A DNA stretch of 64,000 bases from Neoconidiobolus thromboides FSU 785 (taxonomy: Eukaryota; Fungi; Entomophthoromycota). The notes beneath the pieces are model-generated. The model had not been told where the DNA came from. It ran no database searches and was given only the letters and a program-made list of their open reading frames with translations. Both the position numbers and the translations under genes were made by a program. This document shows, piece after piece, positions 17,206-53,829 of the stretch. The stretch's first letter is position 1. Every line of letters starts with the position of its first letter. The DNA lies in contig MU626374.1 of NCBI GenBank assembly GCA_025603075.1, forward strand, positions 1 through 64,000, in the 5' to 3' direction.

Positions 17206-18159
17206 ATGAATTTCCATATTACTTCTATCTTACTATTCGCCTTGACTGGTGTAAGCCAAGCCTATTCCCCGTGGGAAAGCTTTTTTCCACAAAGTGGAAT
17301 GAATAACAATATGGATTTTGGTTCTATGTTTAATCAATTTGGTAATGATAAAAATGGTGGCGATGCTCAAAGCGGTAGTAATTATTTCCCACAGCAAAAT
17401 AACCAAAATTCTCAAAATAACAATATGAATTTCTGGCCCATTCAAGGAGGTAATAATAATAATTATCGTCCTCAACAGCAACAAAATAACAACTATCGTC
17501 CTCAACAGCAACAAAATAACAACTATCGTCCTCAACAGCAACAAAACAATAATATGTTTCGTCCTCAACAACAACAGCAACAGCAGCAGGGTGATGATGA
17601 CATGAGTGGTAATTATCGTCCTCAGCAACAACAGCAACAACAGCAACAACAGCAACAGCAACAAGGTAATGATAACATGAGTAATAATTATCCTCCTCAG
17701 CAACAACAACAGCCACAACAACAACAACAGTCACAGCAACAAAGTAACGGTCAATGTAGCAAGCTTGGTGACATGCCAAACAAGTACCCATTCACTGTAG
17801 AAATGAACAAGAACGCCCCCGGTATACCAAAAGGCCAATGTACTGAATGGGCTGATGGTAGATATTATCAATTAACTGGTCAACACGCTATATTCAATGG
17901 AGATGCCCATCGTTGGAATGAATTAGCTCAAGGTAAGGCTGGTTGGACAGTTTCTAATACACCATCGGTACCTTCAATCGTAGTTATTGAACAATACCAA
18001 GCTGGTTCTGGTGTATATGGCCATGTAGCTGTGGTTGAATCTATGAGTGGAGACACTTTCTGTACATCGAATTGGAATTCGCCAACCTTAGGTGGATTAA
18101 CCTTTAAATCTATGAAAACTGGGCCTGGTATCTCCTTCATTAAATATACTGGAAATTAA
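17206..18159 (+). CDS. Secreted CHAP-domain (cysteine/histidine amidohydrolase-peptidase) protein with N-terminal Q/N-rich low-complexity region
   Basis: Signal peptide MNFHITSILLFALTGVSQA; C-terminal GQCTEWA...GDAHRW...PSVPSIVV...YGHVAVVE...TSNWN matches the CHAP consensus (GQCxWY, GNAxxW, GHVAVVE, SExN). Intronless. Confidence 0.88.
   Translation: MNFHITSILLFALTGVSQAYSPWESFFPQSGMNNNMDFGSMFNQFGNDKNGGDAQSGSNYFPQQNNQNSQNNNMNFWPIQGGNNNNYRPQQQQNNNYRPQQQQNNNYRPQQQQNNNMFRPQQQQQQQQGDDDMSGNYRPQQQQQQQQQQQQQQGNDNMSNNYPPQQQQQPQQQQQSQQQSNGQCSKLGDMPNKYPFTVEMNKNAPGIPKGQCTEWADGRYYQLTGQHAIFNGDAHRWNELAQGKAGWTVSNTPSVPSIVVIEQYQAGSGVYGHVAVVESMSGDTFCTSNWNSPTLGGLTFKSMKTGPGISFIKYTGN
17461..17740 (+). repeat. Coding tandem repeats and polyQ tracts in CHAP gene 1
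   Basis: 30 bp unit aactatcgtcctcaacagcaacaaaataac x3 (17461-17550, NYRPQQQQNN), then two RPQn-G(D/N)DxMSxNY units and CAA/CAG runs. Confidence 0.95.
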
Positions 18160-18261
18160 ATAAAGTTTAGATATTTAAATATAAACCAAAATTTTTACAA
18201 AATATAAATTTTTATTTTTTTTACAATAGTGATTGAATAAAGATTAAGGACTTAAAAAAGC

Positions 18262-20547
18262 TTATAATTTTATAGCTCTATAAAAAGAGGCATACATGTT
18301 CACTCTGTCTAAGGCAATATTGGACCCTTGCTCACGGATACCCATTGGAGAAACTGAAAAGTTAAATTCTTCAAAGAGTTTGTTATACCATGGGAATCTA
18401 GCAGAGGATCTCCAGAATACATAACCTCCCTTTTTAACTTGAACTGACAATTGTTGGATTTCTTCACGAGCATCCTTTTCATTAAACCAATCCATGTGGT
18501 CCATAAGGATCACTTTAGTTAAAGAACTTGGTTCTAAAGATCTTAATACCTCTAAAATGGAAGAAGTATGTAATCTCATGGTATCTAATATATTAGTAGA
18601 CTTTAAACGTTGGAAGTATTTTTGATTGACATAAGATGGGCATGAATCTTGAGTGTATTGTAACTTGAGGCACAAATGATAGAAATATTGATCGTTTGAG
18701 AATAATGAACGGGAAATAATAGGGTCTAAGGTATCGCACATGTATTGGTAAGAAGAACCTTCATTTAACAACATGTTCCATTGATTGATAGGTACACCTA
18801 ATGCTTTCCATAAGAACACTGGGTTGTCTAGCAATTTAATAAACCAAGAATTCAAGATGATGGGACGAATAGATTGATTATAAATGCGCTTTTGCTCTTC
18901 GATTGTTTTAGCCGAACATAAAGCATCTACTTGTTTCTTAATACCTAAACATTTAATTAAAAATTGGACAATGTTAAGAGCATAGCCAGAGCATCCAGTT
19001 TTAAAAAAATTATTTTTAGTAAAGCGATCAGTATTTAGTTTCCAGTATTGATAAGCTGGTGAAGACATATGAGCAGATAACTTTAAATCCAATAAATTTT
19101 CAAAGTTTTCATTAGTACCTTCACCAAACATTTTCCAGAATTCATTATAGCCAAGGGCTTTAATACCAGCAATCTTAAGCTCCAATAAATGATTTTGGTG
19201 AGGATTCATATCAATACAGTGGATTCGTTTAATATCGGCGTGACAAAGGTAATCCAAAGCATTGTCTCCGGCACTAGTAATAACAAACATTTCATCTTCT
19301 GGGTTAAGATCTAACACCTTAATATCTTCTCTTGGGTCTTCCCAAGTAAAGGCGTAAATGTAGGTATCAAATTGAGTGTGACATGGTCTAGTAGGATTAT
19401 ATGGCATACGATTTTTAGTGAAAGATAAAGCAGAAGATTGCTTGCTTTCAGTTTCAATTAATTGAGCTGGCTTAGAAGCTTCAACTTTAGTACTGTTATC
19501 AGCGGATTCTAAAACGGGAATGGGTGTTACACTAGAATCTGAGTAAAAATTAGAGGATTTTGGGGAACCTAACCAAATATAGTATGGGATTTGGACAAGA
19601 TAAGGAACAATGAAATGGTTACGTCCAGAGAAGGATTTGATGGTACTAAATTTATATTCCAAATAATCACGGCGGCATGGATGTAAGTTAATATGATCAA
19701 AATCAAACCAGATTTGCCAGAACCAGCGAGTAAACCAATTACATTGACGATTGACTAAACCACCATCATTTGCAGTAGTTGGTAACACTCTACCAGAGGT
19801 ATAAAAATCACACACACCAATAAAACCATTGGGAGATAGTAATTGATTTACATTATCAATCACAGGGTAGAAAGAATCAATCATCGAAAGGCTATAAGAC
19901 ATAGTAATCAAATCAATCTTTTGTTTAGGGTTATTAAGTTGAGGTAAGATAAAGTTGGAAGCATCAGCACAGACAACATGTACGTTATCCCATCCATTAC
20001 GCTTAAATCTTTCACTTGCTACCTTACATAAAGAGGGGGTTAAATCTACTAAATATACCTTATCAAAATTTTTGATTGGGAAAAAAGAGTTCATTTTTTC
20101 AATATTCCAGCCGGTACCACCACCTAAATCAATCCAAACTAAACCTTCTTGTTTCATTTCACTTAATTTTGAAGCACATAATTTCAACATAGTTGTACGA
20201 CCTCTCAATAATTGACTACGGGTATCATCATAGATGGTAGCTTGGTCTTTATAGAAAGATTCCAACCTTGATTGTTGGTCGCTATTTTTACCTAAAGGTT
20301 TAATGAAACAGGAGTAAATGAATTTGAACTGGGATTGAAATTTAGTGTAAGCTAAAAAGATGGTTAATGATAGAGCAACCAAGAATAAGCCTAAAGCGCC
20401 ATAGCTCTTGTCCATCACTTTATTACTAAGGAATTCTCCTAATAGACTAGGATTAAAGGATAAATAGATCATTCCACCAGCTACAGCGACTAACAGTATG
20501 TTGTAGATGGTAGAGTTGTTTTTTTTTTCTTCTTTTAATGAAGACAT
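18262..20547 (-). CDS. BTA1: Betaine lipid (DGTS) synthase, fused methyltransferase + DUF3419 (BtaB+BtaA)
   Basis: 761 aa single exon; N-terminal TM helices; RLESFYKDQATIYD, WIDLGGGTGWNIE, YLVDLTPSLC (SAM-binding); YIYAFTWEDPREDI, ITSAGDNAL, DMNPHQNHLLELK, LMDHMDWF, DRVNMYASF. Confidence 0.95.
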   Translation of the reverse strand: MSSLKEEKKNNSTIYNILLVAVAGGMIYLSFNPSLLGEFLSNKVMDKSYGALGLFLVALSLTIFLAYTKFQSQFKFIYSCFIKPLGKNSDQQSRLESFYKDQATIYDDTRSQLLRGRTTMLKLCASKLSEMKQEGLVWIDLGGGTGWNIEKMNSFFPIKNFDKVYLVDLTPSLCKVASERFKRNGWDNVHVVCADASNFILPQLNNPKQKIDLITMSYSLSMIDSFYPVIDNVNQLLSPNGFIGVCDFYTSGRVLPTTANDGGLVNRQCNWFTRWFWQIWFDFDHINLHPCRRDYLEYKFSTIKSFSGRNHFIVPYLVQIPYYIWLGSPKSSNFYSDSSVTPIPVLESADNSTKVEASKPAQLIETESKQSSALSFTKNRMPYNPTRPCHTQFDTYIYAFTWEDPREDIKVLDLNPEDEMFVITSAGDNALDYLCHADIKRIHCIDMNPHQNHLLELKIAGIKALGYNEFWKMFGEGTNENFENLLDLKLSAHMSSPAYQYWKLNTDRFTKNNFFKTGCSGYALNIVQFLIKCLGIKKQVDALCSAKTIEEQKRIYNQSIRPIILNSWFIKLLDNPVFLWKALGVPINQWNMLLNEGSSYQYMCDTLDPIISRSLFSNDQYFYHLCLKLQYTQDSCPSYVNQKYFQRLKSTNILDTMRLHTSSILEVLRSLEPSSLTKVILMDHMDWFNEKDAREEIQQLSVQVKKGGYVFWRSSARFPWYNKLFEEFNFSVSPMGIREQGSNIALDRVNMYASFYRAIKL

Positions 20548-20747
20548 ACGATTAATAATAATTACGAATAAAAGGGCTTAATATATTATAAGGATGTTGA
20601 ATCACTAATAACGAAATATTAACCTGTTGAAAGATTTAAAGGTATCTAAAAAGATAAAAAAATAAAGCATTAGTAATTGGTATTTATAGTTTTCAAAACA
20701 ATTAATTGATAAGAATAACTCCAAGTATTATTACTAATAATATATAT

Positions 20748-20852
20748 TGTCAATTGTGTCAAACTTTATAGTGAAGGTGTCAAATTCTAAATTTTGACAT
20801 ATTTCGCCTTCAATTTATTCTTTAATAAATTAATGAGAAAATCAAATTGACA
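20748..20852. promoter_or_regulatory. Cluster of five TGTCAA/TTGACA motifs upstream of BTA1
   Basis: Copies at 20748, 20757, 20778 (TGTCAA) and 20794, 20847 (TTGACA), 200-300 bp upstream of the BTA1 ATG. Confidence 0.5.
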
Positions 20853-23293
20853 AATTGCTAATCTATTCTATAAAATAAAAGGAACTTACAGTATAAACAA
20901 AAGGAATAAAAATAGGTTCAAAAAATCTAGAAATTTTTTTATAGTTTTAATATTGTGAATCGAGATATTGACTCAACTATTTATACTCTAATTTTTTGAG
21001 TTTTAGTAAGTTAAACTACATATACACTAATTTTAATAAAACATTAGAATATCCAAGTGGCCAATAATCTAACCTATCATTTGGACATGCGCAACTCATA
21101 GTTAAATAACTTATTCCCCTAGATACAAATTATTTAATCCAGATGATTAATTTAATTCTTTCACTTCTTATCTATGAAACTTTTAAATAATGATAGATTG
21201 AACAAAGCTCGAGTTTTAATAATACATCAAAAAGGGGAACTATAAAAAGGCATAATAAAGTGTTTAAAAAGGGTGTAATAATTCAAAGATTCTTCCTTAC
21301 CTTATTACACTTTTAATCTAAACTTCGTTTATACCCTCGTTTTTACTCTTCTTTTCTTTCTCTGTTCCTAATTTGTAAGTAAAACCTTAGATTTATTTAT
21401 CCATCTTTTCTCGAGTTAGAAATAGCACTTATTATTGGTGCAAAAATATTTAATATTGTCAACCTTTTTTTTATTAAGGGTGACATCACCTTTCTTTATT
21501 CTTTTTTTGGTTACTTAATAGGCCATGCTTTCTTAATGACTCAAGTTCATTGGTTGAAGCGCCATTTAACTAAAAAGATTATAATTTTTTTAAGTATTTT
21601 AATCAAGGGTAAGAACTTTTAAAAATTAAAACCCGTTTTAGCTATTTGTAAGGTTATATCTCAATAAACTTTAACAAAATGGAAATTGCTAATTGGTCCT
21701 TGACTTATCCCATGTCATCCTCCTTTTTATAGTTTTTGTTATACTATGGTTAAATAAGTGCTATTAAAACTTGCTTGCGTTTAATGCTATAAAAATTTAT
21801 ATTGATAACAAAATGTATGCTAGTCTTTATTTTGTTTTACATTTTAAATACACTTTTGTATTGATTTAAAATTCGAAATGGAGTTTAAGAAACTATACAA
21901 TTTTGGATATTGAGAGTTTTTTAGTATTTATTTTATAAATTATTATATATTGTAATATAGTAACCTGTTTTTAACTAAAACTAAATGATAGTCATTATAT
22001 TTACTTGCATTTATAAAATATCATAAAAGTTAAATTAATTTTATAAATGTACTTTTATAGATATCAAAGAAGTTGTATTTTAATCTAAAATATGAATTCT
22101 TGCCTTTCTATTATAAATATTGATATATAGTTTATTTTTATTTGTAAAAAAATATAATGAAAGTTATTCTATTTAAAAAAATTCAAATAAAGTCAAAGAC
22201 TATATTATACAATATTTTAAACTTTTTAGCCTTACATTACATTCAAATTTAGCAACAATTTACTTTAAAACATTCATTTATTTTTATAAATTATGTGAAA
22301 ATGGTAGTGTTTACTAATAGTTTTAACTAATCTAGCAAACATTTACAAAGTCTTTTAACTACTAGCGTGGGGAACATTAATGATTGAACTATAGATTATA
22401 TAAACAAATGACCTATGTATCACAAAACAAATGTTGAAAGATCAAAATTTATTATCTAATACTACAGGTTAGGAAGGCTGCCTTATGTACTTATTGAGGG
22501 ATCAACTCCCCAACAGGACAGGCCATAACTGAGCACCATAACCATCAGATTAGCCGACCCCAAAAACATGAATTATTGAATGTAAATTTTGGCCTAGTAT
22601 TTCATCAATTTCAAATAATATTTATTTTATATCGTTGTAATAAACATTGTTTTGTTTTATATCATTAAAATGTCAACAAAAGTTTGATTTAATAACATGG
22701 TTTTTAATAATTACTTTTATTGCATAAAAAGTATGTGTAAAAAGGTAAAAAGGTAAACTATTAGAACTATTTTGTAATTAACTTACTATAGCTTTTGAAA
22801 CAAAATTTGTATAATGAAAATAGTTCAGGTTAGACTAAATTATTTGCACAAATAAATCACTGTAGATCTTTATGTTTGTAAGTTTTTTACATCAATATTT
22901 TAAATCGTGCTTTTTGAGGTAGTTAAAAAAGGTGCTTATAATAACGGTTTAAATCCTGGTCATGCATCAGCTAAAAGTTTAATTGACTATCACCTTTGCT
23001 TAATTTATGAAATGTAAAATTAATCCAAGTAAAGCTAATAGGAGTTCGAAGATTGTAAAAATTGGAACTCGAGAATAAGTTGACCAATTAAATAAGCAAA
23101 TAAGGAAATTGATTTGATTTGATGATTTGCATATTTTTTTAATTTATTAAATGGGGAGATGTTTTTTTGATCAGCAAAGAGGAGTACAAAAAACAGCTAA
23201 GTTTAAAGCAATAACTATAAGCCATAAATAATACTATTAATAATAATATAAAAATATTATAAAATAGTGTTGATTATAGTTTTTAAAACTCAA

Positions 23294-24307
23294 ATGTTAT
23301 TTTATTATATTTATTTCTTATTTTACTTTAATTCTTATTATTGTTCATACTATTATAATCCTAACTTCTATTCCAATAGCTATAACTTAATCGCTTATAA
23401 CAATAACGATAATAGTAATGTAAATAATCAAAACAGTGTAAATGATAGCAATGATAATAATAGTGATAATGGCAACATAAACAATAACAGTAATAGCAAT
23501 GAGAGCAACAGTACTAATATAAATAATAATATAAATACCAATAATATTCCTATAAATAATAACAACAATTTAAATGAAAAGAAAGTGAAATTAACGTATT
23601 ATTGGATAGCCATGGAAAAGGATTACCCTTTAAAACCGAACGAAGAAGGAATTAATATTAAAAGTTGTAAAGATAATAAACAAATAATTAAAAAAGTAAG
23701 TAGTCAATACTTTAAGAAGATTCAAATGGAAGGTAGTGGTCTATTGTCAAATAATCAATTTATTAATTGTGGTGATAAGTATTGTAATTGTTTTGATTTT
23801 ACAGAGGGTGCTAAAGGCAATAAAAACAATCTATTGATGCCTTATACATCGATTGCAGCCAATGACTTGACTTTCAACATAAACATATTTAGTAAAGAAA
23901 TCAATGGTACATTATTACCAAATAATCAAGTACATAATGGTTGTTTTAGAGTGGATGATACAAGTTGGTCTTTTAATAATAATCATATTGATTGGTTTGT
24001 TTATGATATCAATAACTATAACTATTTGGACAAAAAATTAAACTATAATGAAGTAACTATACAACTAAACAGCAACTGTAACATCTTGAGCTATAATAGT
24101 ACATCAAATAATAGCAGTAGTAATGTCACAACTACCAACGGTACTACAAATAACAGTAATACAAAATATAATTATAATTTAAACAATATAACTAATACTA
24201 TTCCTATTAGTTATATTAATCCTAAGTATAAACCTAATTTTAAACCTATTTCTACTTCTTTAATATCTAAGTTTAATAATTTTTTTACAAATTATTTTTA
24301 TAATTAA
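23294..24307 (+). CDS. Secreted 3D-domain (MltA-like, three-Asp) protein with Asn-rich linkers
   Basis: First ATG at 23294 (the ORF track starts at a GTG); aromatic/hydrophobic N-terminus; core KLTYYWIA...IQMEGSG...PYTSIAANDL...HNGCFRVDDT...HIDWFV retains the three Asp motifs of the 3D domain. Confidence 0.75.
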   Translation: MLFYYIYFLFYFNSYYCSYYYNPNFYSNSYNLIAYNNNDNSNVNNQNSVNDSNDNNSDNGNINNNSNSNESNSTNINNNINTNNIPINNNNNLNEKKVKLTYYWIAMEKDYPLKPNEEGINIKSCKDNKQIIKKVSSQYFKKIQMEGSGLLSNNQFINCGDKYCNCFDFTEGAKGNKNNLLMPYTSIAANDLTFNINIFSKEINGTLLPNNQVHNGCFRVDDTSWSFNNNHIDWFVYDINNYNYLDKKLNYNEVTIQLNSNCNILSYNSTSNNSSSNVTTTNGTTNNSNTKYNYNLNNITNTIPISYINPKYKPNFKPISTSLISKFNNFFTNYFYN

Positions 24308-24574
24308 TAAACTTTATACACTTACTTTTTATCATTCTCAAATGAATTTAGTTGTCTGAAACTGGATTACATTAGATAACTTTGATTTTTTTAATTTGAT
24401 ATCAAGTCCTTTTATATGAAATTAATGGTTTTAATATTTAATAATTATGAAATTCATATAAAAATTATCACTAACAAATTAAAAAACCAAGAGGCATCTA
24501 AATGCAACTATTAACTTCAAAATCAAATTTGACCATAAAAACAACTTAGCTTTTTTTACTAATTTTATAAAAGA

Positions 24575-26416: not shown

Positions 26417-28006
26417 TTAAACAGTAGCACTATGGCAACTATATGAAGTAATAATATCAGTTAAGGACTTGGGTTCATTGTTTAATAAACTTTTATCATT
26501 TGTATTACTGATATATGAACTTTGCGGCATATCAATACTATCATCATCAATCTCAGAAGATTCATCAAAAAGAATAGAATAATTCGTATTTTTTATAAAG
26601 CTAATATATGGTTTTTCTGGTATAATAATACTACCATCTTTAATTTCACGAAATTTGTTATAAAGGATTGAGTAATTCTTTGCTTTTATAGTACCAAATA
26701 AATCTCTATTATCAATAAGTATAGGCTCACTAATTATATTCCTATTTTGATCTTTTCCAAAATTGTATTTGTATTTGTATTTTATAAAAAGAAAAAATAA
26801 CAGTAATAATAATAGTAGTCCTATTATTCCTCCTATTATACTACCAATTGGCACTTCATTGTTATTCTTACTTATATCTCTTCTTATATCATCATTAGTT
26901 TTATCATTAGTTTTACCATTTTTGTCACTGTTATAGTTAGATATATTATTAGTATTAATTAAAGAAGGTAAATAATTGATTTGAGTCCAGTTGTTTATAT
27001 TGTATATTCCCACCATATTTGAAGATTCAGCATCTAACAAACCATCATTTTTAGAATTAAGGAGTTGGATACCAAACGAATTAATTAAATAATCCTTATA
27101 GATAATAAAACAACCAAAGTTCTTCATTTGAATCACTTTCATTTTCCGAAATGAAAATGGGTTTTGTTGAAATTCATAAATAGTAATATTGTTGATTTTA
27201 GAAGCATTATAGACTATAAAATAAACTGATTGATTGTTTTTAACAATTTTCAACTCATCATATTGTTCAAATTTAATATTGTATACATTTATTTTATTTG
27301 ATATCAAATCTAACTGATGTAATGTATCATAATTTATATTTTTATTTGAGTTATACTTGACTTTCGTTTTAAAATAGTATATCTTATTGTTTAATATGAA
27401 TAATTGTTGAAGGTAAGTATCAGATAGTGCATTTGCTATTGTTTCGAATCTTTTAGTTGTAATATCAAACAGCTTTAATCCAACTGATGAATGGTTATTT
27501 TTACCACGACCTAATATAAACCCAGAAATATAAAACTGTTTTATGTTCTTTTCATTTTGTAAAATAGAGTAGTTGGGCGTTGTTTCTTTTGAACTTGTAT
27601 TGAACCTATCGAACAAGTCTTTAATAATATACTCATTATACCACTCGTTTTTTTCAATATTGAAATATTTTAAAGATATCCCAGCTTTTAGCTTATCCCA
27701 GGAAAAATCGACTATCCTTTTATCACCAATATAAAAAATATTCGAGTCCATTTTTTTATCTGAAATGATTTTGATATTGCTCCTTCTCCATGGCGCTACA
27801 TTGTTGTCTAGTTTGAACCCTTCTTTTAAATCTAATTTGAATACTTCATTATTGCTTTGGTGTATACTTGCTTTCGGTAGTTCGACTTTTCCTCCTAAAT
27901 AATACAATTCATCCCTAATAACAAAGCATTTCCCATTACTTACTGTTGGTAATAGCGTATTTGCTTTATATAACACAACATTAAATAATAAAAATAATAA
28001 AAACAT
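26417..28006 (-). CDS. Type I membrane protein with kelch-like beta-propeller ectodomain, paralog 1
   Basis: 529 aa; signal peptide; kelch-like CFVIRDELYYLGG and GCFIIYKDYLINSFG; TM IGSIIGGIIGLLLLLLLFFLFI followed by KYKYK; cytoplasmic tail. Confidence 0.8.
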   Translation of the reverse strand: MFLLFLLFNVVLYKANTLLPTVSNGKCFVIRDELYYLGGKVELPKASIHQSNNEVFKLDLKEGFKLDNNVAPWRRSNIKIISDKKMDSNIFYIGDKRIVDFSWDKLKAGISLKYFNIEKNEWYNEYIIKDLFDRFNTSSKETTPNYSILQNEKNIKQFYISGFILGRGKNNHSSVGLKLFDITTKRFETIANALSDTYLQQLFILNNKIYYFKTKVKYNSNKNINYDTLHQLDLISNKINVYNIKFEQYDELKIVKNNQSVYFIVYNASKINNITIYEFQQNPFSFRKMKVIQMKNFGCFIIYKDYLINSFGIQLLNSKNDGLLDAESSNMVGIYNINNWTQINYLPSLINTNNISNYNSDKNGKTNDKTNDDIRRDISKNNNEVPIGSIIGGIIGLLLLLLLFFLFIKYKYKYNFGKDQNRNIISEPILIDNRDLFGTIKAKNYSILYNKFREIKDGSIIIPEKPYISFIKNTNYSILFDESSEIDDDSIDMPQSSYISNTNDKSLLNNEPKSLTDIITSYSCHSATV

Positions 28007-29027: not shown

Positions 29028-30473
29028 ATGAAAGCTATACTTTTATTTCAATTACTTATTTATCTTACTCTTTCATTCTCACCAAGAGCTAATAATGGTG
29101 GCTGTATCATACTTGAGGATCGATTATATTATTTGGGCGGACTTACTCGATTTATAAATTTAGACCTCTTATTTGATAATAAGGAAGTGTTTGAATTGAA
29201 CTTAAAGAAAGGCGTTAACTTGATTGGTAACGTAGCTGAAGGATGGGAAAGAAGTAATGTAACCAATTCGCCAGATCGTATGTATGATCCAAGGCTATTT
29301 TATATCAATAAATATAATAATGCTAATGGCATAATAATGAGTTCTTATGTTGATGGAGAAACCATGATCCCAATGCTTAATTTTTATAATATTAAAGAAA
29401 AAGCATGGTTTAATAAAAATGTTTTTAACGAAATATTTGACGCATCAAACACAAAGTGCAATGTTTTTAAAAAATGTATTGTAACTTATTATATATTACA
29501 AAAGGAAACTAGATCAAGTCAATTTTATATCTCTGGCTCAGTTTATAATAAAGATTTAAAGAAGCGATATTCACTTGATTTAAAGTTATTTGACGTTCAG
29601 GCTAAAAGTATAATTACTGTTTACCAATTAAAAAATAATTCATATATACGCCAGGTAGATATTAAACATAACAAGCTATATTATTTCAACGAATATTCAA
29701 ATAATGAATATTTAGATGCTGATTTTAGTATACTATATGAGTTAGATTTAGCTACAACTAAAATCAAAGAACATCGTATCAATTTTGAGCGCTATTTTTC
29801 AATGCAATTTATAACATCAAACTCTTCCATTTATTTTGCTGGCACTAATTTTGATAACAGTGAGGAGGGGTTGGTTCATATTTATGAATTGAAAATTAGC
29901 CCATTTTCATTCAAAAGGATCAAATTAAGATTACCTTTTAACAATTTTGGGTGCTTTAATTACTATAACGATTACTTAATTAATACTTTTGGCATTTTAA
30001 ATGTATTTACCAAAGACGGTATTAGTTCTGAAACTACTGATAAATCCCAGTTCATTAATGTAAAAAACTGGGAGCAAGTTGGTGGTTTACCTTCATCTAT
30101 AATTAATAATGAAAATTCAGCTAATCAAGATAGTAACAAAGAAACAAATAAAGTAAAAAACAACAGCAATAATGACTATAATAATGGGTTATTAATAGGT
30201 AGTATTGTCGGTGGAATTATTGGGTTTGTTTTGATAGCATCAATAGTAATATTTATAATGTATAAATACAAACTAAAGAAGCAAAGACCTCCAAGCATGA
30301 TTATGGATCCCATTATTATTAAACCAATCAATCCATTAGATGCAAATAACAACTATTATAATACAGAAGTATTCAGTCATTCCCATGAACTTGAAGATGA
30401 CATAAGTCATATAATACCTGAAAAGTTGCATATTAAAGACGTAAGAGGGATGAATATGCTTTTTGAAGAATAA
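29028..30473 (+). CDS. Type I membrane protein with kelch-like beta-propeller ectodomain, paralog 2
   Basis: 481 aa; signal peptide; GCIILEDRLYYLGG, EVFELNLKKG and GCFNYYNDYLINTFG; TM IGSIVGGIIGFVLIASIVIFIM followed by YKYK; collinear with 26417..28006. Confidence 0.8.
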   Translation: MKAILLFQLLIYLTLSFSPRANNGGCIILEDRLYYLGGLTRFINLDLLFDNKEVFELNLKKGVNLIGNVAEGWERSNVTNSPDRMYDPRLFYINKYNNANGIIMSSYVDGETMIPMLNFYNIKEKAWFNKNVFNEIFDASNTKCNVFKKCIVTYYILQKETRSSQFYISGSVYNKDLKKRYSLDLKLFDVQAKSIITVYQLKNNSYIRQVDIKHNKLYYFNEYSNNEYLDADFSILYELDLATTKIKEHRINFERYFSMQFITSNSSIYFAGTNFDNSEEGLVHIYELKISPFSFKRIKLRLPFNNFGCFNYYNDYLINTFGILNVFTKDGISSETTDKSQFINVKNWEQVGGLPSSIINNENSANQDSNKETNKVKNNSNNDYNNGLLIGSIVGGIIGFVLIASIVIFIMYKYKLKKQRPPSMIMDPIIIKPINPLDANNNYYNTEVFSHSHELEDDISHIIPEKLHIKDVRGMNMLFEE

Positions 30474-32862: not shown

Positions 32863-34128
32863 ATGAATAAAAGTATAAAATATAAAAACATAAAATGGAG
32901 AGTAAAGGTATTGGATATAGCTACAATCCCTCTAAATAAAACAGATCGACCTAAAGATGACCTACCAACTGATTCCCCGGTTAAAGTTAACTGTGTAAAT
33001 AGAAAATTGACCAAAAATGAAATAATAGAAATGAGAATATTAAGTCTGAGAGACGGCAACTTTATCAACTTTAATTCCGATAATATCCATATATTATTAG
33101 ATCCTGATATTTCTGGCATTTCCTCTGACAACCCATTTCCTGAATATCATCAAAACAATGACTACTTAAAGGAGGATTTTAGAAATAAAGTCAAAGATGA
33201 TAGTGAATCAACTTTTAAAGAATATAGGCTAGTTTCAAAAGACCATAATCAATTTGGTAGCAATGGTTATGGTCACAACGACCGAGGCAATAATTCAATA
33301 AGGAAAAGCAGTTATATTGAAGCTAGTGATGACGATAGCATTAGTTTATGTGATTCTTTTGATCAATTAGCTAAACAAATGCTAAAGCGAGAGACACTAC
33401 TATATCAAAGTTATTTTGAATCAAAAGAAGCAGACTTTAATCAGAATTTAGTTCTAGAGTTAAATATGAGTGATCCATATAGTCAAGATTTAGCTCTAGA
33501 ATCTAGTTTAAATGATTCATGTAACCAAATTATATGTGATGATCATAGATCTTATTCTATCCCTTTGAGTAACTCAATAAGTAATAATATAGCGACCGAC
33601 GGTGGTAACCCCATTTTAGGGAATGAAAATGATAAGCTACAAGTATTGAAGCCTTTATACTACGATGATCAAGGATCTATAGAGGAATCAAAGCATCGGG
33701 GCGAACGATTAGATTTAGATGCTGAATTCTCATTTGAAAATTTAAGCCAAGAGGAAGAACAAAATATCATTCCAACCATTCATTCTAGATACAATGACTT
33801 TTATCAAAATTATCAACTACCAAACAGCGAGCTGATATTTGATTTTTTTTATATAAATCATTTACCACTATCAACAATTATTACTTTAAAGGAAGTAAAC
33901 TATTTATTATGTATTAATGCAGATATAATTCAACGACTATTGTTAAATTGTATGGCTTATGCAACGTTGTATTATTTAAAAAGGGACTTAAATCTTATTA
34001 TATATTATAAACAACAAATCAAAGTTCTTTTAATCTATATAGCGCAAAATTATCTTTATAATATCAACTTAAGGTACTATAACATCTCTGTCAGTATTCT
34101 AACAATGTCCAATTTCTTTAATGAATAA
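32863..34128 (+). CDS. Hypothetical protein (orphan, acidic/Ser-rich)
   Basis: 421-codon open frame in very AT-rich DNA is unlikely by chance; no family recognised; shares an E-x3-Y-x2-YFES motif with 35791..36609. Confidence 0.65.
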   Translation: MNKSIKYKNIKWRVKVLDIATIPLNKTDRPKDDLPTDSPVKVNCVNRKLTKNEIIEMRILSLRDGNFINFNSDNIHILLDPDISGISSDNPFPEYHQNNDYLKEDFRNKVKDDSESTFKEYRLVSKDHNQFGSNGYGHNDRGNNSIRKSSYIEASDDDSISLCDSFDQLAKQMLKRETLLYQSYFESKEADFNQNLVLELNMSDPYSQDLALESSLNDSCNQIICDDHRSYSIPLSNSISNNIATDGGNPILGNENDKLQVLKPLYYDDQGSIEESKHRGERLDLDAEFSFENLSQEEEQNIIPTIHSRYNDFYQNYQLPNSELIFDFFYINHLPLSTIITLKEVNYLLCINADIIQRLLLNCMAYATLYYLKRDLNLIIYYKQQIKVLLIYIAQNYLYNINLRYYNISVSILTMSNFFNE

Positions 34129-42680: not shown

Positions 42681-43033
42681 AAGTTAAGTTTATACCAAAA
42701 GATCTTGTCAAACAAAAATGCATCTTAACAAATAAAAAGATCTGCAGTTAAATATTGAGCAAAGATTCATCTAATCCTATTTTGCAACTGCATTGCGACT
42801 TAATTACTGACTTATTTGAGAGTAAAACTTTTATAAATCACGTTGAATTGTACATTAAACTTTTGGAAACTAAATCGACAAATATTTGACCTTGAAATTA
42901 TTGCAATTTTGATCGCACTTTGTTGCAAAACTGTAATAAAAATGATACCTCTCTTTGATATTTAGCTATAAATCTTTTTATTTACTAAAGATGTATTTTT
43001 ACTTGACAAGGCCTTTTGGCATAAACTTGACTC
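42681..43033. mobile_element. Foldback-type element, near-complete imperfect palindrome (353 bp)
   Basis: Left arm AAGTTAAGTTTATACCAAAAGATCTTGTCAAACAAAAATGCATC... matches the reverse complement of the right arm (GAGTCAAGTTTATGCCAAAAGGCCTTGTCAAGTAAAAATACATC...) for more than 120 bp, fading toward the centre; no TSD recognised. Confidence 0.75.
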
Positions 43034-45615: not shown

Positions 45616-46847
45616 GTAGTATTAGATGAAGGGTTATTTTCTATCTGGATTGGTGACTTTTTGACTGTGTTTTAGCTTCTTTATATACTTATTTTACAAA
45701 AAGTTTGCCTACATCATTAATACATGATGGTTATTTTTATTTTTATTGTTTTCAAAGAAATAACTTTTAGTAATAATTTCTACTATGGCTATATTGATCT
45801 TCGTTCTACTATTCAATTTTTTTAGTATGCTTTTCATAAAGCATATATGTTTATCTTTGGCTCTGCAAAACCTTTACTATAAAACACTATTTGACTATAT
45901 TTTTTTGATTTCACCTCTTTTTCCATTTCTTAAAGGCTGTTTGAGTGGAAGAGTTGTTGATAAAATTCTTAGACACAAAAAATACATTCCCATTTATTAC
46001 AATTTTGTTCATGTATTTGGTGTTTATTTTATATATCATTATGTTGATGTTTGATAATATAATTAGTGATGTAAAGGCATTAGTAAATATTTGGAAAAAA
46101 GGTAATGTACAGTAAATTTCTTGTAATAATATACTAGTGACTAGCAATATTAGATTAAATTTAAAATCATAAAGTTTGTATAATATCTGGGAAAATTATA
46201 TTTATTTTGAGATTGCTATTTCTTTTAATTTAAATTCATTCATTCAAATTTTAGTATGATTGATTTTTAGTTCGCATGAAAAATTAGGTGACTATGCTAC
46301 TTAAATTGATTTATGAACTATTCCTAGGTTAGTATGAATATCCATTTGATATAAATTATTAAAGAAAACAGACAATAGTTTTGTGTTAATGCTAAAAATC
46401 AAGCTTTAAGCAGATTGCTATTTTTTTACTATTGAAATTTATATGAAAGAAATAGTTGAATCCCTGATTATAAATTTTGGAGCAAACATCAATCCTTACT
46501 TTAGTTTTGGTTGATTTAAGAATCAATAAAGGACAGAAAAAGCTATTATGTATTCAAAAGTCAGTCCAATTAAATACTAATAGTACTTATTCAATAAATG
46601 TATCATAATAATATAATATAGTTTTATATTCTTAAAGGATCTAGAGTATAATCCATATTTTTATAATGAAATAGAAACAAGGTTAAATTTTAAATCATTT
46701 TAATATAAAGTTTTTAGTTTCTAGCTTTTAGTTTTTTTAATCAACATTAGTTTTAAAGATTTATAATTTTATTTAATTTAAGTATTAAAATCGACTTAGT
46801 CTCAGAGTATGAAAATATTATATAGGATGGTTTTTATGACATAATAT

Positions 46848-46946
46848 GGAGATGTGTTTTTGTGTTCAAGAATCTTACTAATAATTTTTCCAATCAAATA
46901 GCGCTTAAAAAGTGGAAAAAGTAATGAAGTAAAAAAAAACGCCCCC
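46848..46946 (-). mobile_element. MITE family A, copy 7 (99 bp)
   Basis: GGAGATGTGTTTTTG...AAAAAAACGCCCCC; flanks ATAT/ATAT. Confidence 0.9.
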
Positions 46947-47017
46947 ATATACTAACTAATCTATTACCTTATAATAGTACTATTGGACAATTTTCTTACC
47001 ATATTTATTATAAATTT

Positions 47018-47115
47018 GGGAGTGTTTTTTCGACTTCATTATTTTTTCCATTTTTTAAGCGCTATTTGAGCGGAAAGTTTGTTAATAAAATTCTCAAATA
47101 CAAAGATACATCCCC
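47018..47115 (+). mobile_element. MITE family A, copy 8 (98 bp)
   Basis: GGGAGTGTTTTTT...AAGATACATCCCC; flanks ATTT/ATTT. Confidence 0.92.
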
Positions 47116-47486
47116 ATTTATTAGTTAGTTTTTATAATTAACTTGTTAGGCCACAAATACATATAGATATCTTAAATAAAAAGCTACATTTAATTAGCAG
47201 TATTAAATATTTCCAGCTAATTAAATTATGTTGCTAAAATTCCTAAATTCCACTAATTAAATACTAATAGCTATGATAAATACATTCAGCTTTTTTGTTT
47301 TGATAAGTTGATCACAATCATGCTTTTCAAAAACTAATGTCACTTTAAAAGTTAATTATAATTTTCTTTTTGATATGTGCTGTTGAGTTTTATTATAGAT
47401 TTTTCAAATTTAAATAAATTACTCTTGATTTTTGAACTGTTTTTGGTTTAAATGAGTAATTATATATATTATTAAAAGTATGATAT

Positions 47487-47584
47487 GGGGGTGTTTTTTT
47501 GGTTTCATTACTTTCTCTATCTTTCAAGCACCATTTGAGGGGGGAAATTGTTAATAAGATTTTTAAACACAAAAATACATCCCC
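47487..47584 (+). mobile_element. MITE family A, copy 9 (98 bp)
   Basis: GGGGGTGTTTTTT...AAAAATACATCCCC; flanks ATAT/AAAT. Confidence 0.9.
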
Positions 47585-49389
47585 AAATCTTGAATTTAGA
47601 CAAATAAAATGCAAATATAGATTTTTAATTGTAAACTGTTTAAAAAGGCAAGAAGCGTATTTTGATGTAACCAATATAAAAAAACCGAAACAGTACTAAA
47701 TTTAATGACTATTGTAAAATTACGGATTTTTTGAACTTACATAGATCTGGTATAATAGTAAAAATAAAACTTATAGATGAGTGGATATTACAAATAAACA
47801 TTGGCTAGGTTTACCTAGAGATTGAGATTTTTATATTTATTAATTCATATTACTTTTAAATATCACTTTTATAACTTGAAATATCGGATTTATCTTCTCC
47901 CAACCTTCATTCAAGAAGTTTATATTCAAGTTTTATTATTATTGCAATTTAATACCTGGATTAATGATTAATAGTTCCGTTACTATTTTCAAGTCGACCA
48001 CTCTATAATAAGGAATTTCACTATAGCAAAGATAAATTATTGAAAACGGGTACTGAAGGGTCATGAAATCAAATTGTGCGATATTAATTCGAAAATTGTT
48101 ATAAGCTTATTGATATGTTTAGTGACATTCTTCTTTATTTGTTAATTTCATTGAATAAAATTAGAAATTAACTTTAGATAAACAATTTAGTCTCTAATTA
48201 TTTGACACATAAAACATGCTATAATAGTTATAAATATAACATAAAAAGGAGGCTGGATATATTTTTCTGAAACTGAAAGTATAAAAGTATATTAAAATGC
48301 AAAACCACATGATTTAAGTGAGTCGTCTAATTAATAATTGAGATTCCCTATGATATTAGTATCCAACTAAGCCTAGAACTTAGTTAAATAAGTACTATAT
48401 TTTTATTTTTATAGATTTAGATTAATTTCGTACTTTAATATTTGTGATAACAATTATTCTGAGAATGAGGTAATTTTAGTAGGACATTGTTAATTTTTTA
48501 GAGGGCTTAATACAAAACTTTAGTGATTTGTTAGCCAAAGTAAAAGCTGTTTAAACAAAAACAGTAATAATGTTAATATAGCTTAGAAGATTAAAATAAA
48601 CCACTATAGTCTATATAGTTTAAGAACTGTTTTATTTCTAAGTTGTGTTTTATTATAAGAATTCCACCTATAGCTTACATCAGGACTTTTCTACTTAGCA
48701 ATAACAGAAAATCTACTGTTTTTAGCCTCGCCGCTATCTTAATTTTATTTCTACATTAGTATATTACTAAAATAATGACTGGTATTCCTTTTTTACACTA
48801 TACTATCCGTCTTATAATAAAATAAAGATTTAAAGGAACAATAGGATTTATTATAAGAAAATAATAAAGAGTGATGAATTTAAACTGGGATGCTTTATAC
48901 CAATATAGTAAAATGTATTTTTGAGAATTGATTTCTACTTATAGAGGTAATTATCATTGTATAGAAAAAAGATTGAGTATCCTATTAATCATATCCTTTC
49001 TAGCATATAGTTTTTATTTTAGACAAAATATTTAACATTTCAATACATTACTTTATAATAAGAAGACTAATGGTGCGAATATTAATAAAAACATATTGGC
49101 GTTATCTAAATTGTATTACTGTGTATATTAAATAATATAAAAAAGCTAAATAAATATTACTTATTTTTAAATTTGTTATTGTAAAAATAAACCATGCAAT
49201 TTAAAAAATCTGGTTTAAAATTAGTGAGTTGGATAAAAGTTATTTTGGATTTTCGGAATTCAGTGAATTGAAAAATTCTTGGATTTTTTCTTTAAGAATA
49301 AATTCGCTAATTCTTAGAAATACAGGACTATATATACTTTCAATAAGAAACAACTTATCGTGTTATATTATCAAAAATAATTCAAATTG

Positions 49390-50257
49390 ATGAGTACTTC
49401 AACTAAGCTAAAGTCTAAGAAAAACTGTGTTCAAGCTTGTGATGGATGTAAAGTGAAAAAGAGAAAATGCGTAAAGGGACAGGATGCAATATGTGAAAAC
49501 TGCAAAAGGCTAGGCAGCGTATGCACTTATTTAATAAAAAACAATAAACGGGGAAATTCAGAAAATTATAAAAAGAAGTCAGCTTCTACCCCAATAATAG
49601 AAGGATCTATGGCAAACTATCCAATGAGCTCTGGCGACCGCTTTTCTGCCAATACAAGCCCTGGAACTCAATTTACTTATGCTTCTACTTCTTATACAAA
49701 TGTACCATCATCTTATCGCAATCGAAGCCCATTATGTTTGGAGGTAAATTCACTGGATTCAAACCTATCGAACGGTACTTTCTTTGACTATGATATGGAG
49801 TTAAATGAGTATGTAATTAAAGGATGTGAGCTAGAAGATTTATTCAACTTAAGCGAAAATTTCCATAAAATACCAAATATCAATTTGATTTCAGTGATAT
49901 CTGAGCAGCAAATTAGAGATCTAAGGTTTATACCTTTAACTAATTCGATCTTGTTATTATTGTACTCTTTAGCTTCAATCACACAGTATTACAGTGATCC
50001 TTTAGATATGAAGAAAGTTTCAATTTTGTATAATAAGGGTCTTAAGCTATTGCCAGATTGCTCCAATATTCCTGAAATTGAAACGCCAGTAGTAAACACA
50101 GCTGTCTTCATTTTAAATTGCTTATACTGTAACCTAAATATGTAATTACTTTATTCTTTTGTGCCTTATCTTTTTATTATAAATTAAATAATTTTTTACC
50201 TCTTATAGTTCTTATATTATTTTAGAACATAAAATGACATTGGAATTTATAGTTTAG
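49390..50257 (+). CDS. Zn(II)2Cys6 fungal transcription factor
   Basis: QACDGCKVKKRKCVKGQDAICENCKRLGSVCTY = CX2CX6CX7CX2CX6C. ATG at 49390. A probable terminal intron (gtaatt..atag, ending 50208) extends the ORF from 50145 to TAG at 50257; this 3' end is less certain. Confidence 0.88.
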
Positions 50258-51445
50258 AATTGTTATTCATACTAGTTTAGTATATCATAAAATCCGAGTT
50301 TTATTTAAAATATTATTAATATAAATTTTGACATAAATTCTGCTATTAAAACATAATCTTTTTCATTTCATATGATGAATTTAAAATAAAATAAGACGAT
50401 GATAGTCATTAGTATACAAAAGAAACGTAAATAAAAAATATTGACTAAAATTAAAGACAATCAATTATTTGGACTTAAACTAGAGTTTTATTCTAACAAA
50501 ATATGAATATAAACTTTTATCCTGTTGAAGGCCACTCTCTGATAGTACAGAAAATAATCATGATTATTTTGTAGTTCTTAAATTTGGATTTATGACAACA
50601 ATTTGAAATCCATGCTTTTACGGTAATAGATAACTTATCCTTTTCCCTTTACATAAAAAATGTAAAGACTCATTGTTAACATTCTAGGTTAAAATATAGT
50701 TCGAAAAATAATACAAATGGCCCTGGATAGCATTATGGGCTTATTTAAATGTGCAAAAATCTCTAAAAGGTAAAGCTATTTCCTAAAATTACAATAAGCT
50801 ATGAAAGTATTGAACTCCTTTACTCCTTTTGTTTTATATCGCCCCTTTTGCTATACCTTTCATTTTTTGGTTTAACTGTTTACGTTAATAAAGCGCCAAT
50901 GGACTTATATACATGAGTTTTTTAATTATGCAAAATAGCAGTAGTCCATATTTATAGTAAAATTACAATTTCGAGTTGAATCTTTAATAAACGAGCTGTT
51001 GGTACTTTCTTACACTCAAATAAAGTGTGTCCTAGTTTCAAAGTTATTTCGTGCCGATTTAATTAATTACAATTAATAATACTTAAATAACTTATATTAA
51101 ATAATAAGAATATACAAAGATAAACATGGATATTATAGGTTATTAAGCTAATAAAGTAAATTTTTACAGTAATAACAAATTAATTACAAGTGCAATTTAA
51201 GTAATCACAATAGCAGAAGACAAACCTATAGATCTCATTTAATTGGTGGAAACGTAAAAGTAATATAATGCTTACTAAAATTAGACAATGAGAGCTTGAA
51301 AAAGTTCTTGAAATTATACATTTAATAAATTATATATTAAATTGAAAGTCATTATAGAGAAAATAAGAATTTTTAAAACTTTTACTTTTTTTAACTTTGA
51401 TAGTTCACTATTTAATTTAATAATACAATAATATAATATACTACA

Positions 51446-52279
51446 ATGTTATCTGTGGACCAACTTTTAAATCATGTATCTAGTAATAGTTTTTATAAGA
51501 AGCTTAGTTAATAATCAACTAACTGAAGTTTAGGTTATATAAATTACGTCCTTATAGGATTTGGCATAATCTTAGTAGCCTTTGGTATTGCGTTTTTAGT
51601 AGTCAATCGTCGTCTCATTAAGTTCCTTTACTTTGTATCTGGTGTTCAAATCTTTGGTAATTACTATAAGTTAATACTATAAACATCGAATTAATATCTT
51701 TCATTAACAATAGCAAGTTTGTCCTTTTTAATTGGTTCAACTATAATATACTCCAGCAACATCAAAGACCCCAATAATTATACTCCACTTTATATACTAT
51801 TTGGTACATCTGCAGGTTTAGGATTAGTTGGTGGTATTTTGGGTGCTTACTTTACAAGGTTTGGCTCAGTTTTAGTAGGTTTAGCAGGTGGTTTAAATCT
51901 ATGGCAACTAGTAGCCGGATTTATTAAGAACCCTACGCTTAACTTAGTATTTTCAATTTTATTAGCTATTGTAGGTGGTATCTTATGTGGCTTCTTCAAA
52001 AACCCAATTGAAGTTGTACTTGCTGCATTTACAGGATCTCATTTGTTTACTAAAGGGCTCTTTCTTATCACCCAAGGTGCTATGGTATTATCCGCTTTAC
52101 CTAACCCTAAATTAGTCAAGTATTTGTATTTTGCTATGATCGGAGAGGTTTGCTTAAAAGCTTTGGTATTTATTATCAATGCTGCTATCCATCTTATGAG
52201 ATACTTTAGTGAAAATGGAGAAGCTGTAGATCAAGAAACACCCGAAAGTCAACCAATGTTAGAGCGTGATCAGGAGTGA
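51446..52279 (+). CDS. Multi-pass membrane protein, DUF4203-like, paralog 3; 3 exons
   Basis: ATG at 51446; spliced MLSVDQLLNHVS|SYINYVLIGFGIILVAFGIAFLVVNRRLIKFLYFVSGVQIF|ASLSFLIG joins the 51719..52279 ORF; aligns along its length with 8354..9097. Confidence 0.8.
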
Positions 52280-53211
52280 TTGCACATTTAGTAGCTAGCA
52301 ATTTAACGGGGTTTGTTTTCATTTTTATGTATTTTTGAAAATAAAATATTTTAAACTACCAAAATCAGTAATCTAATGTGACAAAATGCTTTAAAGAAAT
52401 ATTTTGAAATCCACTCTTGTTTCAGTATCTTTTGCATATTCCAAACAGCCTAAGATATAAAAAATATTGGGTTTTCTCGTATATCCTACCACGAAAAACA
52501 AAAGATTGCGTAGAATCTATTCTTGAAGGTACCAATACTACAACAATAAGGTCATTTTTTGCAATGTTGTCACTGTTTCCCAAAAAAAATCCCAATCGAA
52601 AAAGTTACTAATAAGATTGATTTTATACTACAAAAAATTGGGATTAGCTAAAAACTATCTCCTTATCAAAAAGCTTAGAAGTTTGAATTACAGTTTTAGC
52701 CAAAACTACTACTTTTTTAGAGTTAGATTTTTGCAGCAAATATATGGGAAAATCTAATATAGACAAATTCTTAAAACATGAGTATTTGGAATTTAGATTA
52801 TTAAGAAATTGAAATACTCATTTATTTAATATCGACAATGTTGTAAAAGATATATAAAGAAATAAACACTCAACATTAAATTAAAATACCCAACTTTATT
52901 ATCAACTAAAAAGTATTGATTAGATCCTTTAATAAAATTAATACTTTAGCAGTAAAGAGTAGTTAGAAATCATTTGTTTAAAAAACGAGGTAAAAAAGAT
53001 GTAATTTTTTAACCAACTTTAAAAAAATACAAGTATGAAGTCTAATAAAATTGTAATTCTACTTTAAATAGATTAGGTAAAACTCTATGATGAAATAAAA
53101 TAACGTTTCTGTTTTGCCTCATGGGCAACTAATGTAATTGATTGATTATGATATGTAAATATATATATAGTCTGGAAAATAAAACAATACTAAAATCAAA
53201 TTCACTATTTA

Positions 53212-53829
53212 ATGCTTTTCAATTTTATCATCATCTTATTCTTATATAATCATCTATCAATATTATGCCTCAATATTCAAGGTCCACTGTTAAATAGTCA
53301 AAAAGGTAAAGTACATAGTAAATTAAAGTTAAAGCATAATACTAATTAAAGCATAGATATATTATCTTCTAATGCACCAAATAGCTATAGTTTTGATTCA
53401 ACAAATGATAGCTATGATAGTGATCTTGAATGTGAACTAGCACACTTACCTACTAAGTATCCATTTTCCATTGAAATGAACAAATACGCTTCACATATAC
53501 CAAAAGGTCAATGTACCGAATGGGCGGATGGTAGATACTATCAACTTACCGGCAACCATGCTTTGTTTAATGGTGATGCCTATAAGTGGAATGAATTGGC
53601 AAGCAATAATCAAGATTGGAAAGTGAGCAAAATTCCTAAGGTACCATCCATAATGGTAACTGAAAAATATACGAACGGAGCAGGGGAATTCGGCCATGTC
53701 TCTATAGTGGAATCTATTATTGATCAAAATACAGTGTGTACCTCAAACTGGAATTTTCCTCAAAGAGGCAAACTTACGCTTAAAAAAGTTAGGATTATTC
53801 CTTCTACTTCGTTCATTTATCATAGATAG
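53212..53829 (+). CDS. Secreted CHAP-domain protein, paralog 2; 2 exons
   Basis: ATG 53212 with signal peptide MLFNFIIILFLYNHLSILC; 51 nt GT-AG intron 53306-53356 with an ACTAAT branch site; IPKGQCTEWADGRYYQLTG identical to paralog 1; FGHVSIVE and CTSNWN retained. Confidence 0.88.

Follow-up and report, generated by a model that had tools for sequence, protein, structure and literature searches.

Two resident CHAP-domain genes of the fungus Neoconidiobolus thromboides with relatives in Ktedonobacteria and a probable bacterial origin

The domestication of bacterial cell-wall hydrolases by eukaryotes is already an established concept, which limits the surprise of any further case, and the GH25 lysozymes that were transferred to eukaryotes follow the same concept. 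In Ixodes ticks, Dae2 is a domesticated bacterial amidase effector (bioRxiv 10.1101/2020.04.10.036376), and in the oomycete Saprolegnia parasitica a secreted CHAP family of seven genes has been proposed to stem from horizontal gene transfer (HGT; PMC3681718). Here we describe two CHAP genes of the fungus Neoconidiobolus thromboides FSU 785, CHAP-1 and CHAP-2, which lie within a stretch of 64,000 nucleotides (the window; positions 1 to 64,000 of contig MU626374.1, assembly GCA_025603075.1). An earlier reading of the letters alone (the sequence-only reading) had picked them out as paralogs at 17206..18159 and 53212..53829, and both open reading frames (ORFs) are present at these positions on the forward strand. 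We regard it as probable that they are resident, functional genes for secreted CHAP cysteine amidases or peptidases that derive from an ancient bacterial transfer and act on bacterial peptidoglycan.

Both proteins match PF05257, the CHAP family (MEROPS peptidase C51), in a Pfam scan, each at 50.2 bits and E 3.6e-13 against a gathering cut-off of 26 bits, with the CHAP-1 match covering amino acids (aa) 206-289. A six-frame scan of the whole assembly (24.6 Mb in 799 contigs) returned two CHAP loci only, at 53.9 and 50.2 bits, the CHAP-1 match lying at 17821-18072. A 19-residue block, IPKGQCTEWADGRYYQLTG, is identical in CHAP-1 and CHAP-2, and the catalytic Cys (GQC) and His (GHV) are intact in both copies; the family assignment, the invariant block and the catalytic pair proposed in the sequence-only reading thus all held.

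CHAP-1 (17206..18159, +) is a single uninterrupted exon without an intron, delimited by its ORF and the PF05257 match, and encodes 317 aa arranged as a signal peptide, a Q/N-rich linker and a C-terminal CHAP domain. The predicted signal peptide, MNFHITSILLFALTGVSQA (19 aa, 17206..17262, +), was read by eye from the sequence; its core is hydrophobic, residues -3 to -1 read S-Q-A, the next is Y, and the whole looks canonical. The low-complexity linker that follows (17263..17727, +), recognised by its composition and tandem repeats, is about 170 aa long, with Q and N making up 52% of aa 20-190. Within it, Tandem Repeats Finder reports a 30-nt unit repeated 3.1 times with 96% identity at 17455-17546 and a 75-nt unit repeated 2.4 times at 17566-17747, and these repeats are young. 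The counterparts of this linker in other members differ in composition, being N/S/G-rich in Basidiobolus and P/K/T-rich in Entomophthora muscae. The folded module (aa 175-317; 17728..18156, +), defined from an AlphaFold2 model, Foldseek matches and residue positions, carries C184 in an N-terminal extension, the catalytic residues C212 (17839-17841) and H273 (18022-18024), an invariant E278, C286, and the pair N289 and N291. Residue N289 occupies the position equivalent to the Glu of other CHAPs, and N291 is the conserved downstream Asn.

CHAP-2 (53212-53829, +) encodes 188 aa and is predicted to contain one intron of 51 nt. Exon 1 (53212..53305, +), assigned by reading the sequence, comprises 31 codons plus one base and encodes a hydrophobic leader; it is followed by the predicted GT..AG intron in phase 1 (53306..53356, +), placed by frame and motif, with a TACTAAT branch-like site near its 3' end. 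Exon 2 (53357..53829, +), delimited by PF05257 and alignment, encodes a short linker and the CHAP module. With the intron removed, the gene becomes a 567-nt frame of 188 codons with no stops, and the alignment to CHAP-1 upstream of the domain (E-C-x-L...P-x-K-Y-P-F) is restored. Searches with CHAP-2 were run with exon 2 (53359-53826, +), the joined protein serving for length and stop count only. The catalytic Cys and His are encoded at 53512-53514 and 53695-53697, the extra Cys pair at 53431-53433, upstream, and 53737-53739, and the Asn pair at 53746-53748 and 53752-53754. The sequence-only reading had described a spliceosomal intron in one copy, eukaryotic signal peptides in both and two extra Cys. 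The predicted GT-AG intron of CHAP-2 agrees with the first of these, the extra Cys occur in both copies (C184 and C286 in CHAP-1), and both leaders, judged by eye, are hydrophobic, that of CHAP-2 being the less canonical.

A profile built from five fungal domains matches solved CHAP peptidoglycan hydrolases, the best being the S. aureus SAOUHSC_02979 amidase (5t1q, 5e-12), with the hub CHAP of phage phi812 (1e-7), the S. saprophyticus CHAP and PcsB among the others. Residues C212 and H273 of CHAP-1, and the same columns of CHAP-2, align with the Cys and His of the solved CHAPs, and both residues are kept in 22-24 of the 24 members of the Entomophthorales clade. The motif TSNWN aligns with SESN, SEHN and SEMN of the solved staphylococcal and phage CHAPs, placing an Asn at their Glu, as had been noticed from the letters. 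An AlphaFold2 model of CHAP-1 aa 175-317, made from a 58-row alignment, reached a predicted local distance difference test score (pLDDT) of 90.9 and a predicted template modelling score (pTM) of 0.88, with the N-terminal extension also confidently modelled. In the numbering of the model, a helix (39-50) begins directly after Cys38, and His99 lies within a strand (98-107). Foldseek returned 22 matches at E <= 1e-3, all of the CHAP type and nearly all peptidoglycan hydrolases; they include 5t1q, phi812, Ly7917, the tail tip of phage Andhra, LysGH15, PlyGRCS, LysK, PcsB, LysIME-EF1 and the nuclear magnetic resonance structures 2lrj and 2k3a. The structure prediction thus bears out the proposed family, and, as judged from the model, CHAP-1 and CHAP-2 are true CHAP-fold proteins with an intact Cys and His. 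They are neither phage endolysins nor modular Gram-positive autolysins, consisting of CHAP alone in a fungal chromosome context.

The relatives of the two proteins fall into a small number of groups. A profile search of 1.84 billion representatives gave 1241 matches at E <= 1e-3, 300 at <= 1e-10 and 15 at <= 1e-30, and the named proteins among the best 17 all come from Entomophthora muscae, Massospora or Conidiobolus coronatus (KXN70074 and KXN74260 in the last); a word-based search found proteins of E. muscae and Massospora cicadina only. E. muscae has at least nine distinct family proteins. Next in rank come Basidiobolus ranarum and B. meristosporus, with at least 12 representatives, followed by Dictyobacter vulcani, Dictyobacter sp., metagenome-assembled genomes (MAGs) of Ktedonobacteraceae and unnamed metagenome proteins, the Ktedonobacteria (Chloroflexota) matching at E 1e-17 to 1e-29. 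Some members carry the automatic database label 'Peptidase C51 domain-containing protein'. Full-text literature searches, which took in the genome paper of E. muscae and the paper on HGT in Basidiobolus, turned up no description of CHAP genes in Entomophthoromycotina.

On the bacterial side, 331 relatives emerged when species-level genomes, one for each bacterial species, were scanned with a profile of the bacterial group, and the best 80 are almost all from Ktedonobacteria (Dictyobacter, Ktedonobacter, Ktedonospora, Thermogemmatispora, Thermosporothrix and Tengunoibacter). Five of these 80 belong to Bifidobacteriaceae and sit on a long branch inside the subfamily, which may reflect transfer between bacterial phyla. 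Three Ktedonobacteria genomes hold 11, 14 and 4 CHAP loci, most of them of the fungal-type subfamily; its members score 112-174 bits with the subfamily profile, against 15-41 for the distant CHAPs of the same genomes. CHAP-1 is 40-43% identical to the bacterial domains, which is not below its identity to many of its fungal paralogs (34-56%). On sequence grounds, the fungal proteins are thus included in what we define here as a Ktedonobacteria-type CHAP subfamily, recognised by the block, GHVAVVE and T-S-(N/D/S)-x-N. The sequence-only reading had described CHAP domains as typical of Gram-positive autolysins and phage endolysins; the nearest bacterial kin here are chromosomal genes of Ktedonobacteria, not Firmicutes autolysins or phage endolysins. 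It had correctly placed the genes in a fungus; they are, however, not private to this genome, being shared with Entomophthora, Massospora and Conidiobolus and with a related clade in Basidiobolus.

Comparison across the subfamily separates what the fungal proteins have in common with bacteria from what is their own. At the Glu-equivalent column, the 229 bacterial or unnamed relatives have Asn in 170 cases, Asp in 21, Ser in 18 and Glu in 4, and across the subfamily the position varies to include N, D, S, A, T, Q and H. The second Asn is retained by 220 of the 229 and, among the fungi, by 21 of the 24 rows of the Entomophthorales clade and every one of the 12 from Basidiobolus. The bacterial members read GQCT(Y/W)WA--RY-QLTG, and the wording of the clade, KGQCTEW / [AT]DGR[YF][YF]QLT, occurs in 28 stretches among 185,579 bacterial species genomes, none of which is a relative. 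All 24 Entomophthorales-clade rows have a Cys directly before TSNWN and none of the 12 from Basidiobolus does; in bacteria, Cys is missing from the eight residues most often found at that column. The upstream Cys of the extension (often E-C-x-L), about 25 residues before the catalytic Cys, is found in all 22 clade members listed. The Basidiobolus proteins have neither the Cys pair nor the N-terminal extension. Specific to the Entomophthorales clade are solely the Cys pair and the precise spelling of the block, KGQCTEW and DGRYYQLT. Of the features that had been called untypical of bacterial CHAPs, these two therefore stand, whereas the Asn and the GQCT-WA--RY-QLTG block are common to the bacterial subfamily, from which most of these features were thus inherited. 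Since the two Cys co-occur across the clade, a co-occurrence that amounts to one evolutionary event rather than independent covariation, C184 and C286 probably form a disulfide that ties the extension to the last strands.

Variation is also seen at the active site itself. In two Entomophthorales-clade rows (P0011 and one more) the catalytic Cys is replaced by Ser, and in six, E. muscae paralogs among them, the position of Asn289 is occupied by His. The rows with Ser may be inactive copies, and the expanded fungal family may include pseudoenzymes or enzymes of altered specificity.

Phylogenies were computed with FastTree (186 domains) and with IQ-TREE (95 rows, 125 columns, LG+C20 with posterior mean site frequencies). 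FastTree recovers the Entomophthorales clade with support 90 and the Basidiobolus clade with 94, and a branch with support 92 sets both fungal groups apart from all bacterial rows. In the IQ-TREE tree, CHAP-1 and CHAP-2 are sisters (99/81) and therefore a duplication that arose in this lineage; support is 76/65 for the Entomophthorales clade and 100/99 for the Basidiobolus clade. The latter adjoins two proteins (94/86), the bacterial P0096 from a soil metagenome and one from a Ktedonobacteraceae MAG, and is nested among Ktedonobacteria-type rows. The contig that encodes P0096 also carries a tightly packed operon for an E1 dehydrogenase. An ancient transfer from bacteria is well supported by these comparisons. 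The direction, from bacteria to fungi, follows from the size and diversity of the subfamily in Ktedonobacteria, from the bacterial and phage character of CHAP at large, and from the restriction of named eukaryotic members to Entomophthoromycotina; a horizontal origin, as the sequence-only reading had it, is the best reading of this distribution.

CHAP-1 and CHAP-2 are resident fungal genes. CHAP is overwhelmingly a bacterial and phage domain, and CHAP-1 has no intron, as would be expected if bacterial or phage DNA had contaminated the fungal assembly or been joined to it by mis-assembly. Against this, both genes sit inside a 66-kb contig between intron-bearing eukaryotic genes; downstream of CHAP-2 lie the genes for an RRM/FoP protein and for Not1, the latter interrupted by an intron. 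The GC content at third codon positions is 0.28-0.30 in the CHAP genes, matching the 0.30-0.33 of their neighbours, in a window that is AT-rich throughout (GC 0.23-0.35). CHAP-2 is readable only with its GT-AG intron removed, and one public-run contig spans CHAP-2 and the RRM gene with zero differences. The closest homologues come from four other entomophthoromycotine genera, and the KGQCTEW / DGRYYQLT wording occurs in no relative from any bacterial genome scanned. On gene context, base composition, the intron and the entomophthoromycotine homologues, contamination was ruled out, in line with the doubt already voiced about it in the sequence-only reading, and we consider its probability negligible. 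Descent from an ancient vertical eukaryotic gene, or passage of the family from fungi to Ktedonobacteria, is very unlikely. It would suit the fully host-like composition of the CHAP genes and the tree rooted with distant Ktedonobacteria CHAPs (L089, L090 and L100), where the branch of the Entomophthorales clade lies outside every bacterial member of the subfamily that was sampled; that outgroup, however, attaches by a branch of 2.2 changes per column beside the long Entomophthorales stem, and we do not trust a root that joins such long branches. Moreover, the named eukaryotic matches among the 1.84 billion representatives are Entomophthoromycotina only, Ktedonobacteria have 4-14 diverse paralogs per genome with 331 bacterial relatives across species, CHAP in general belongs to bacteria and phages, and the Basidiobolus rows lie inside bacterial rows. 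How many transfers took place is a closer matter, and one transfer and two are both compatible with the data. Two transfers, an older one into the Entomophthorales stem and a recent one into Basidiobolus from a Ktedonobacteria-like donor, have in our view a little less than an even chance against a single transfer into the common ancestor. They would account for the position of Basidiobolus beside bacterial proteins and away from the Entomophthorales clade, and for its lack of the Cys pair and the N-terminal extension, and Basidiobolus has been reported to have 2-5% HGT-candidate genes (PMC7466969). Forcing all fungi into one clade, however, costs only 1.17 log-likelihood units (approximately unbiased test, p-AU 0.478), the FastTree tree of 186 rows keeps the fungi on one side of a branch, and about 125 columns leave the deep forks unresolved.

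For the proteins themselves, we infer secretion, a disulfide, a substrate and an ecological role. The family would have entered fungi long ago from a bacterial donor of a CHAP subfamily now found almost only in soil Ktedonobacteria, and after the transfer would have gained eukaryotic signal peptides, low-complexity linkers and at least one intron. The Entomophthorales clade would have gained the Cys pair, with its probable disulfide, and the family would have duplicated, many times in Entomophthora muscae and Basidiobolus and twofold here, CHAP-1 and CHAP-2 representing a lineage-specific duplication. The proteins would be secreted; Cys212 would be activated by His273, itself oriented by the Asn289/Asn291 pair, and the enzyme would cleave an amide bond of bacterial peptidoglycan, within either the stem peptide or the cross-bridge. 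Bacteria that compete for soil litter, dung or insect cadavers, or are eaten on them, would thereby be lysed or digested. To our knowledge, fungi have no peptidoglycan; since the proteins also have secretion leaders, the target bacteria would be outside the cell, as competitors or food.

By analogy with studied CHAPs, we lean, somewhat beyond an even chance, towards papain-like Cys-His amidases or endopeptidases acting on the stem peptides of external bacteria. An unlikely but appreciable alternative is that the secreted enzymes cut some other amide or peptide bond (gamma-glutamyl bonds, polyamine conjugates, or host or fungal surface proteins), or cut peptidoglycan fragments so as to blunt immune sensing by insects. 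CHAP domains also include non-peptidoglycan amidases such as glutathionylspermidine (Gsp) amidase, and this enzyme and trypanothione synthetase-amidase were found in the fold search at E 4e-3 to 5e-2. The Glu-equivalent position varies (N, D, S, A, T, H), a hint that the active site is unusual, and many members of the family come from insect pathogens. Those two amidases, however, rank lower in Foldseek, and all top sequence and fold matches are peptidoglycan hydrolases; the family is also present and expanded in Conidiobolus and in the saprotrophic or gut-dwelling Basidiobolus, and so is not tied to insect infection; and we know of no extracellular glutathionylspermidine substrate in fungi. 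Inactive or unexpressed genes take up what probability remains. Besides the outgroup root and the breadth of the CHAP fold, several observations weigh against active, secreted peptidoglycan hydrolases. For the substrate, the extrapolation starts from distant CHAPs of staphylococci and phages, which are 30-34% identical. Pfam found no cell-wall-binding domain (SH3b, LysM, CW_binding or PGRP) in the window proteins or in their fungal and bacterial kin, which have CHAP only; by analogy, this absence fits small free CHAP lysins but weakens the comparison with endolysins, and it also suits a non-peptidoglycan substrate. The CHAP-2 leader, by eye, has no charged n-region. Finally, the splice joint 53306/53356 was not seen over the region 52500-55500 in the four best-matching public runs out of 15, only one of the 15 being recorded as RNA, with 5% of the words; these four runs retain the CHAP-2 intron and cover intergenic DNA, and thus behave as DNA, not RNA.

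Public runs under a second organism label carry a diverged CHAP-2 allele. Among the variants listed, those in the CHAP domain comprise six synonymous changes and one K>R, and six of the ten in the leader and linker upstream of the domain change a residue. The variants are few, and their pattern is that of a constrained catalytic domain, under purifying selection, behind a freely evolving linker.

Directly downstream of CHAP-1, on the opposite strand, lies an intronless gene for a betaine lipid synthase of 761 aa (methyltransferase and DUF3419; 18262-20547, -). Its best named relatives are all fungal, at 47-58% identity, and come from Glomeromycotina, Mucoromycotina, Mortierellomycotina, Kickxellomycotina and Basidiomycota; the closest named are from Glomeromycotina/Mucoromycota (52-58%), and an entomophthoralean protein is absent among the 120 matches listed. 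Elsewhere in the window, an ORF of 346 aa (23267-24307, +) has no Pfam match even at E <= 0.05, and four ORFs of 247-529 aa (26417-28006, -; 29028-30473, +; 32863-34128, +; 8354-9097, +) match no Pfam family at E <= 1e-3 and are lineage-specific or fast-evolving genes. A short dispersed repeat of about 80 bp at 55261-55349 is covered 10-100 times as deeply as its flanks in each of the four public runs and is found in dozens of contigs, running into unrelated sequence on both sides; it may be a high-copy element, either similar to a miniature inverted-repeat transposable element or of another kind.

Should the enzymes prove to lyse bacteria, no earlier CHAP-type antibacterial effector would be on record from a fungus, and they would be a clear case of a wall-remodelling gene of soil Chloroflexota turned into a secreted fungal tool. 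The finding would then matter for two questions: by what means entomophthoralean fungi defend insect cadavers against bacteria, and how Basidiobolus manages to live in guts rich in them. The subfamily, with hundreds of Ktedonobacteria members, is uncharacterised, and in place of the Glu of studied CHAPs it has Asn or, in some members, Asp, Ser or His; a single biochemical study would be informative for the bacterial branch and the fungal one alike, and might provide new small lysins (about 140 aa) that have no binding domain. The link to Chloroflexota and the Asn-type active site may be of interest to specialists. We speculate further that a single ancient transfer brought a Ktedonobacteria-type CHAP autolysin into the ancestor of Entomophthoromycotina, where it would have become a secreted family with a new disulfide in Entomophthorales, expanded in Entomophthora and Basidiobolus and serving as an antibacterial weapon on cadavers, in guts and in litter, a counterpart of Dae2 with a Cys-His-Asn/Asn site new to the study of CHAPs; in this full form the proposal is doubtful.

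Set beside known systems, the fungal proteins are closest to the Ktedonobacteria CHAPs (Dictyobacter vulcani WP_151755742 and paralogs in Ktedonobacter, Thermogemmatispora and Thermosporothrix), which are presumably autolysins. These belong to the same subfamily at 40-43% domain identity, share GQCT-WA--RY-QLTG, GHVAVVE and T-S-N-x-N with Asn at the Glu position, and likewise have the catalytic domain at the C terminus, after a region of about 200 aa without a Pfam domain. Unlike the fungal proteins, they have neither the N-terminal extension with its upstream Cys nor the Cys before TSNWN, and no eukaryotic signal peptide, Q/N-rich linker or intron, and they occur in 4-14 copies per genome. 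The staphylococcal and phage CHAPs (5t1q, phi812 9eum, LysK CHAPK 4csh, LysGH15 4olk and PcsB 4cgk) have the same fold (Foldseek E 5e-8 to 3e-4; template modelling score 0.54-0.71 by query) and the same Cys, His and downstream Asn. They differ in sequence (18-34% identity), in having Glu in S-E-x-N where the fungal proteins have Asn, and in being modular, with SH3b, amidase or other domains, or parts of virions, whereas the fungal proteins are CHAP only. The CHAP family of Saprolegnia is similar in being a secreted, duplicated eukaryotic family flagged as a bacterial acquisition; it belongs to another eukaryotic lineage, no Saprolegnia protein occurs among the named members of the best 150 matches, and by this measure it is probably a separate acquisition. 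Dae2 differs in that the Dae proteins derive from the Tae effectors of type VI secretion rather than from autolysin-like PF05257 genes, that activity has been shown for it, and that the recipient here is a fungus. What the two cases would have in common, on the fungal side by analogy, is that a eukaryote acquired a bacterial enzyme that cleaves peptidoglycan, equipped it with a signal peptide and turned it against bacteria.

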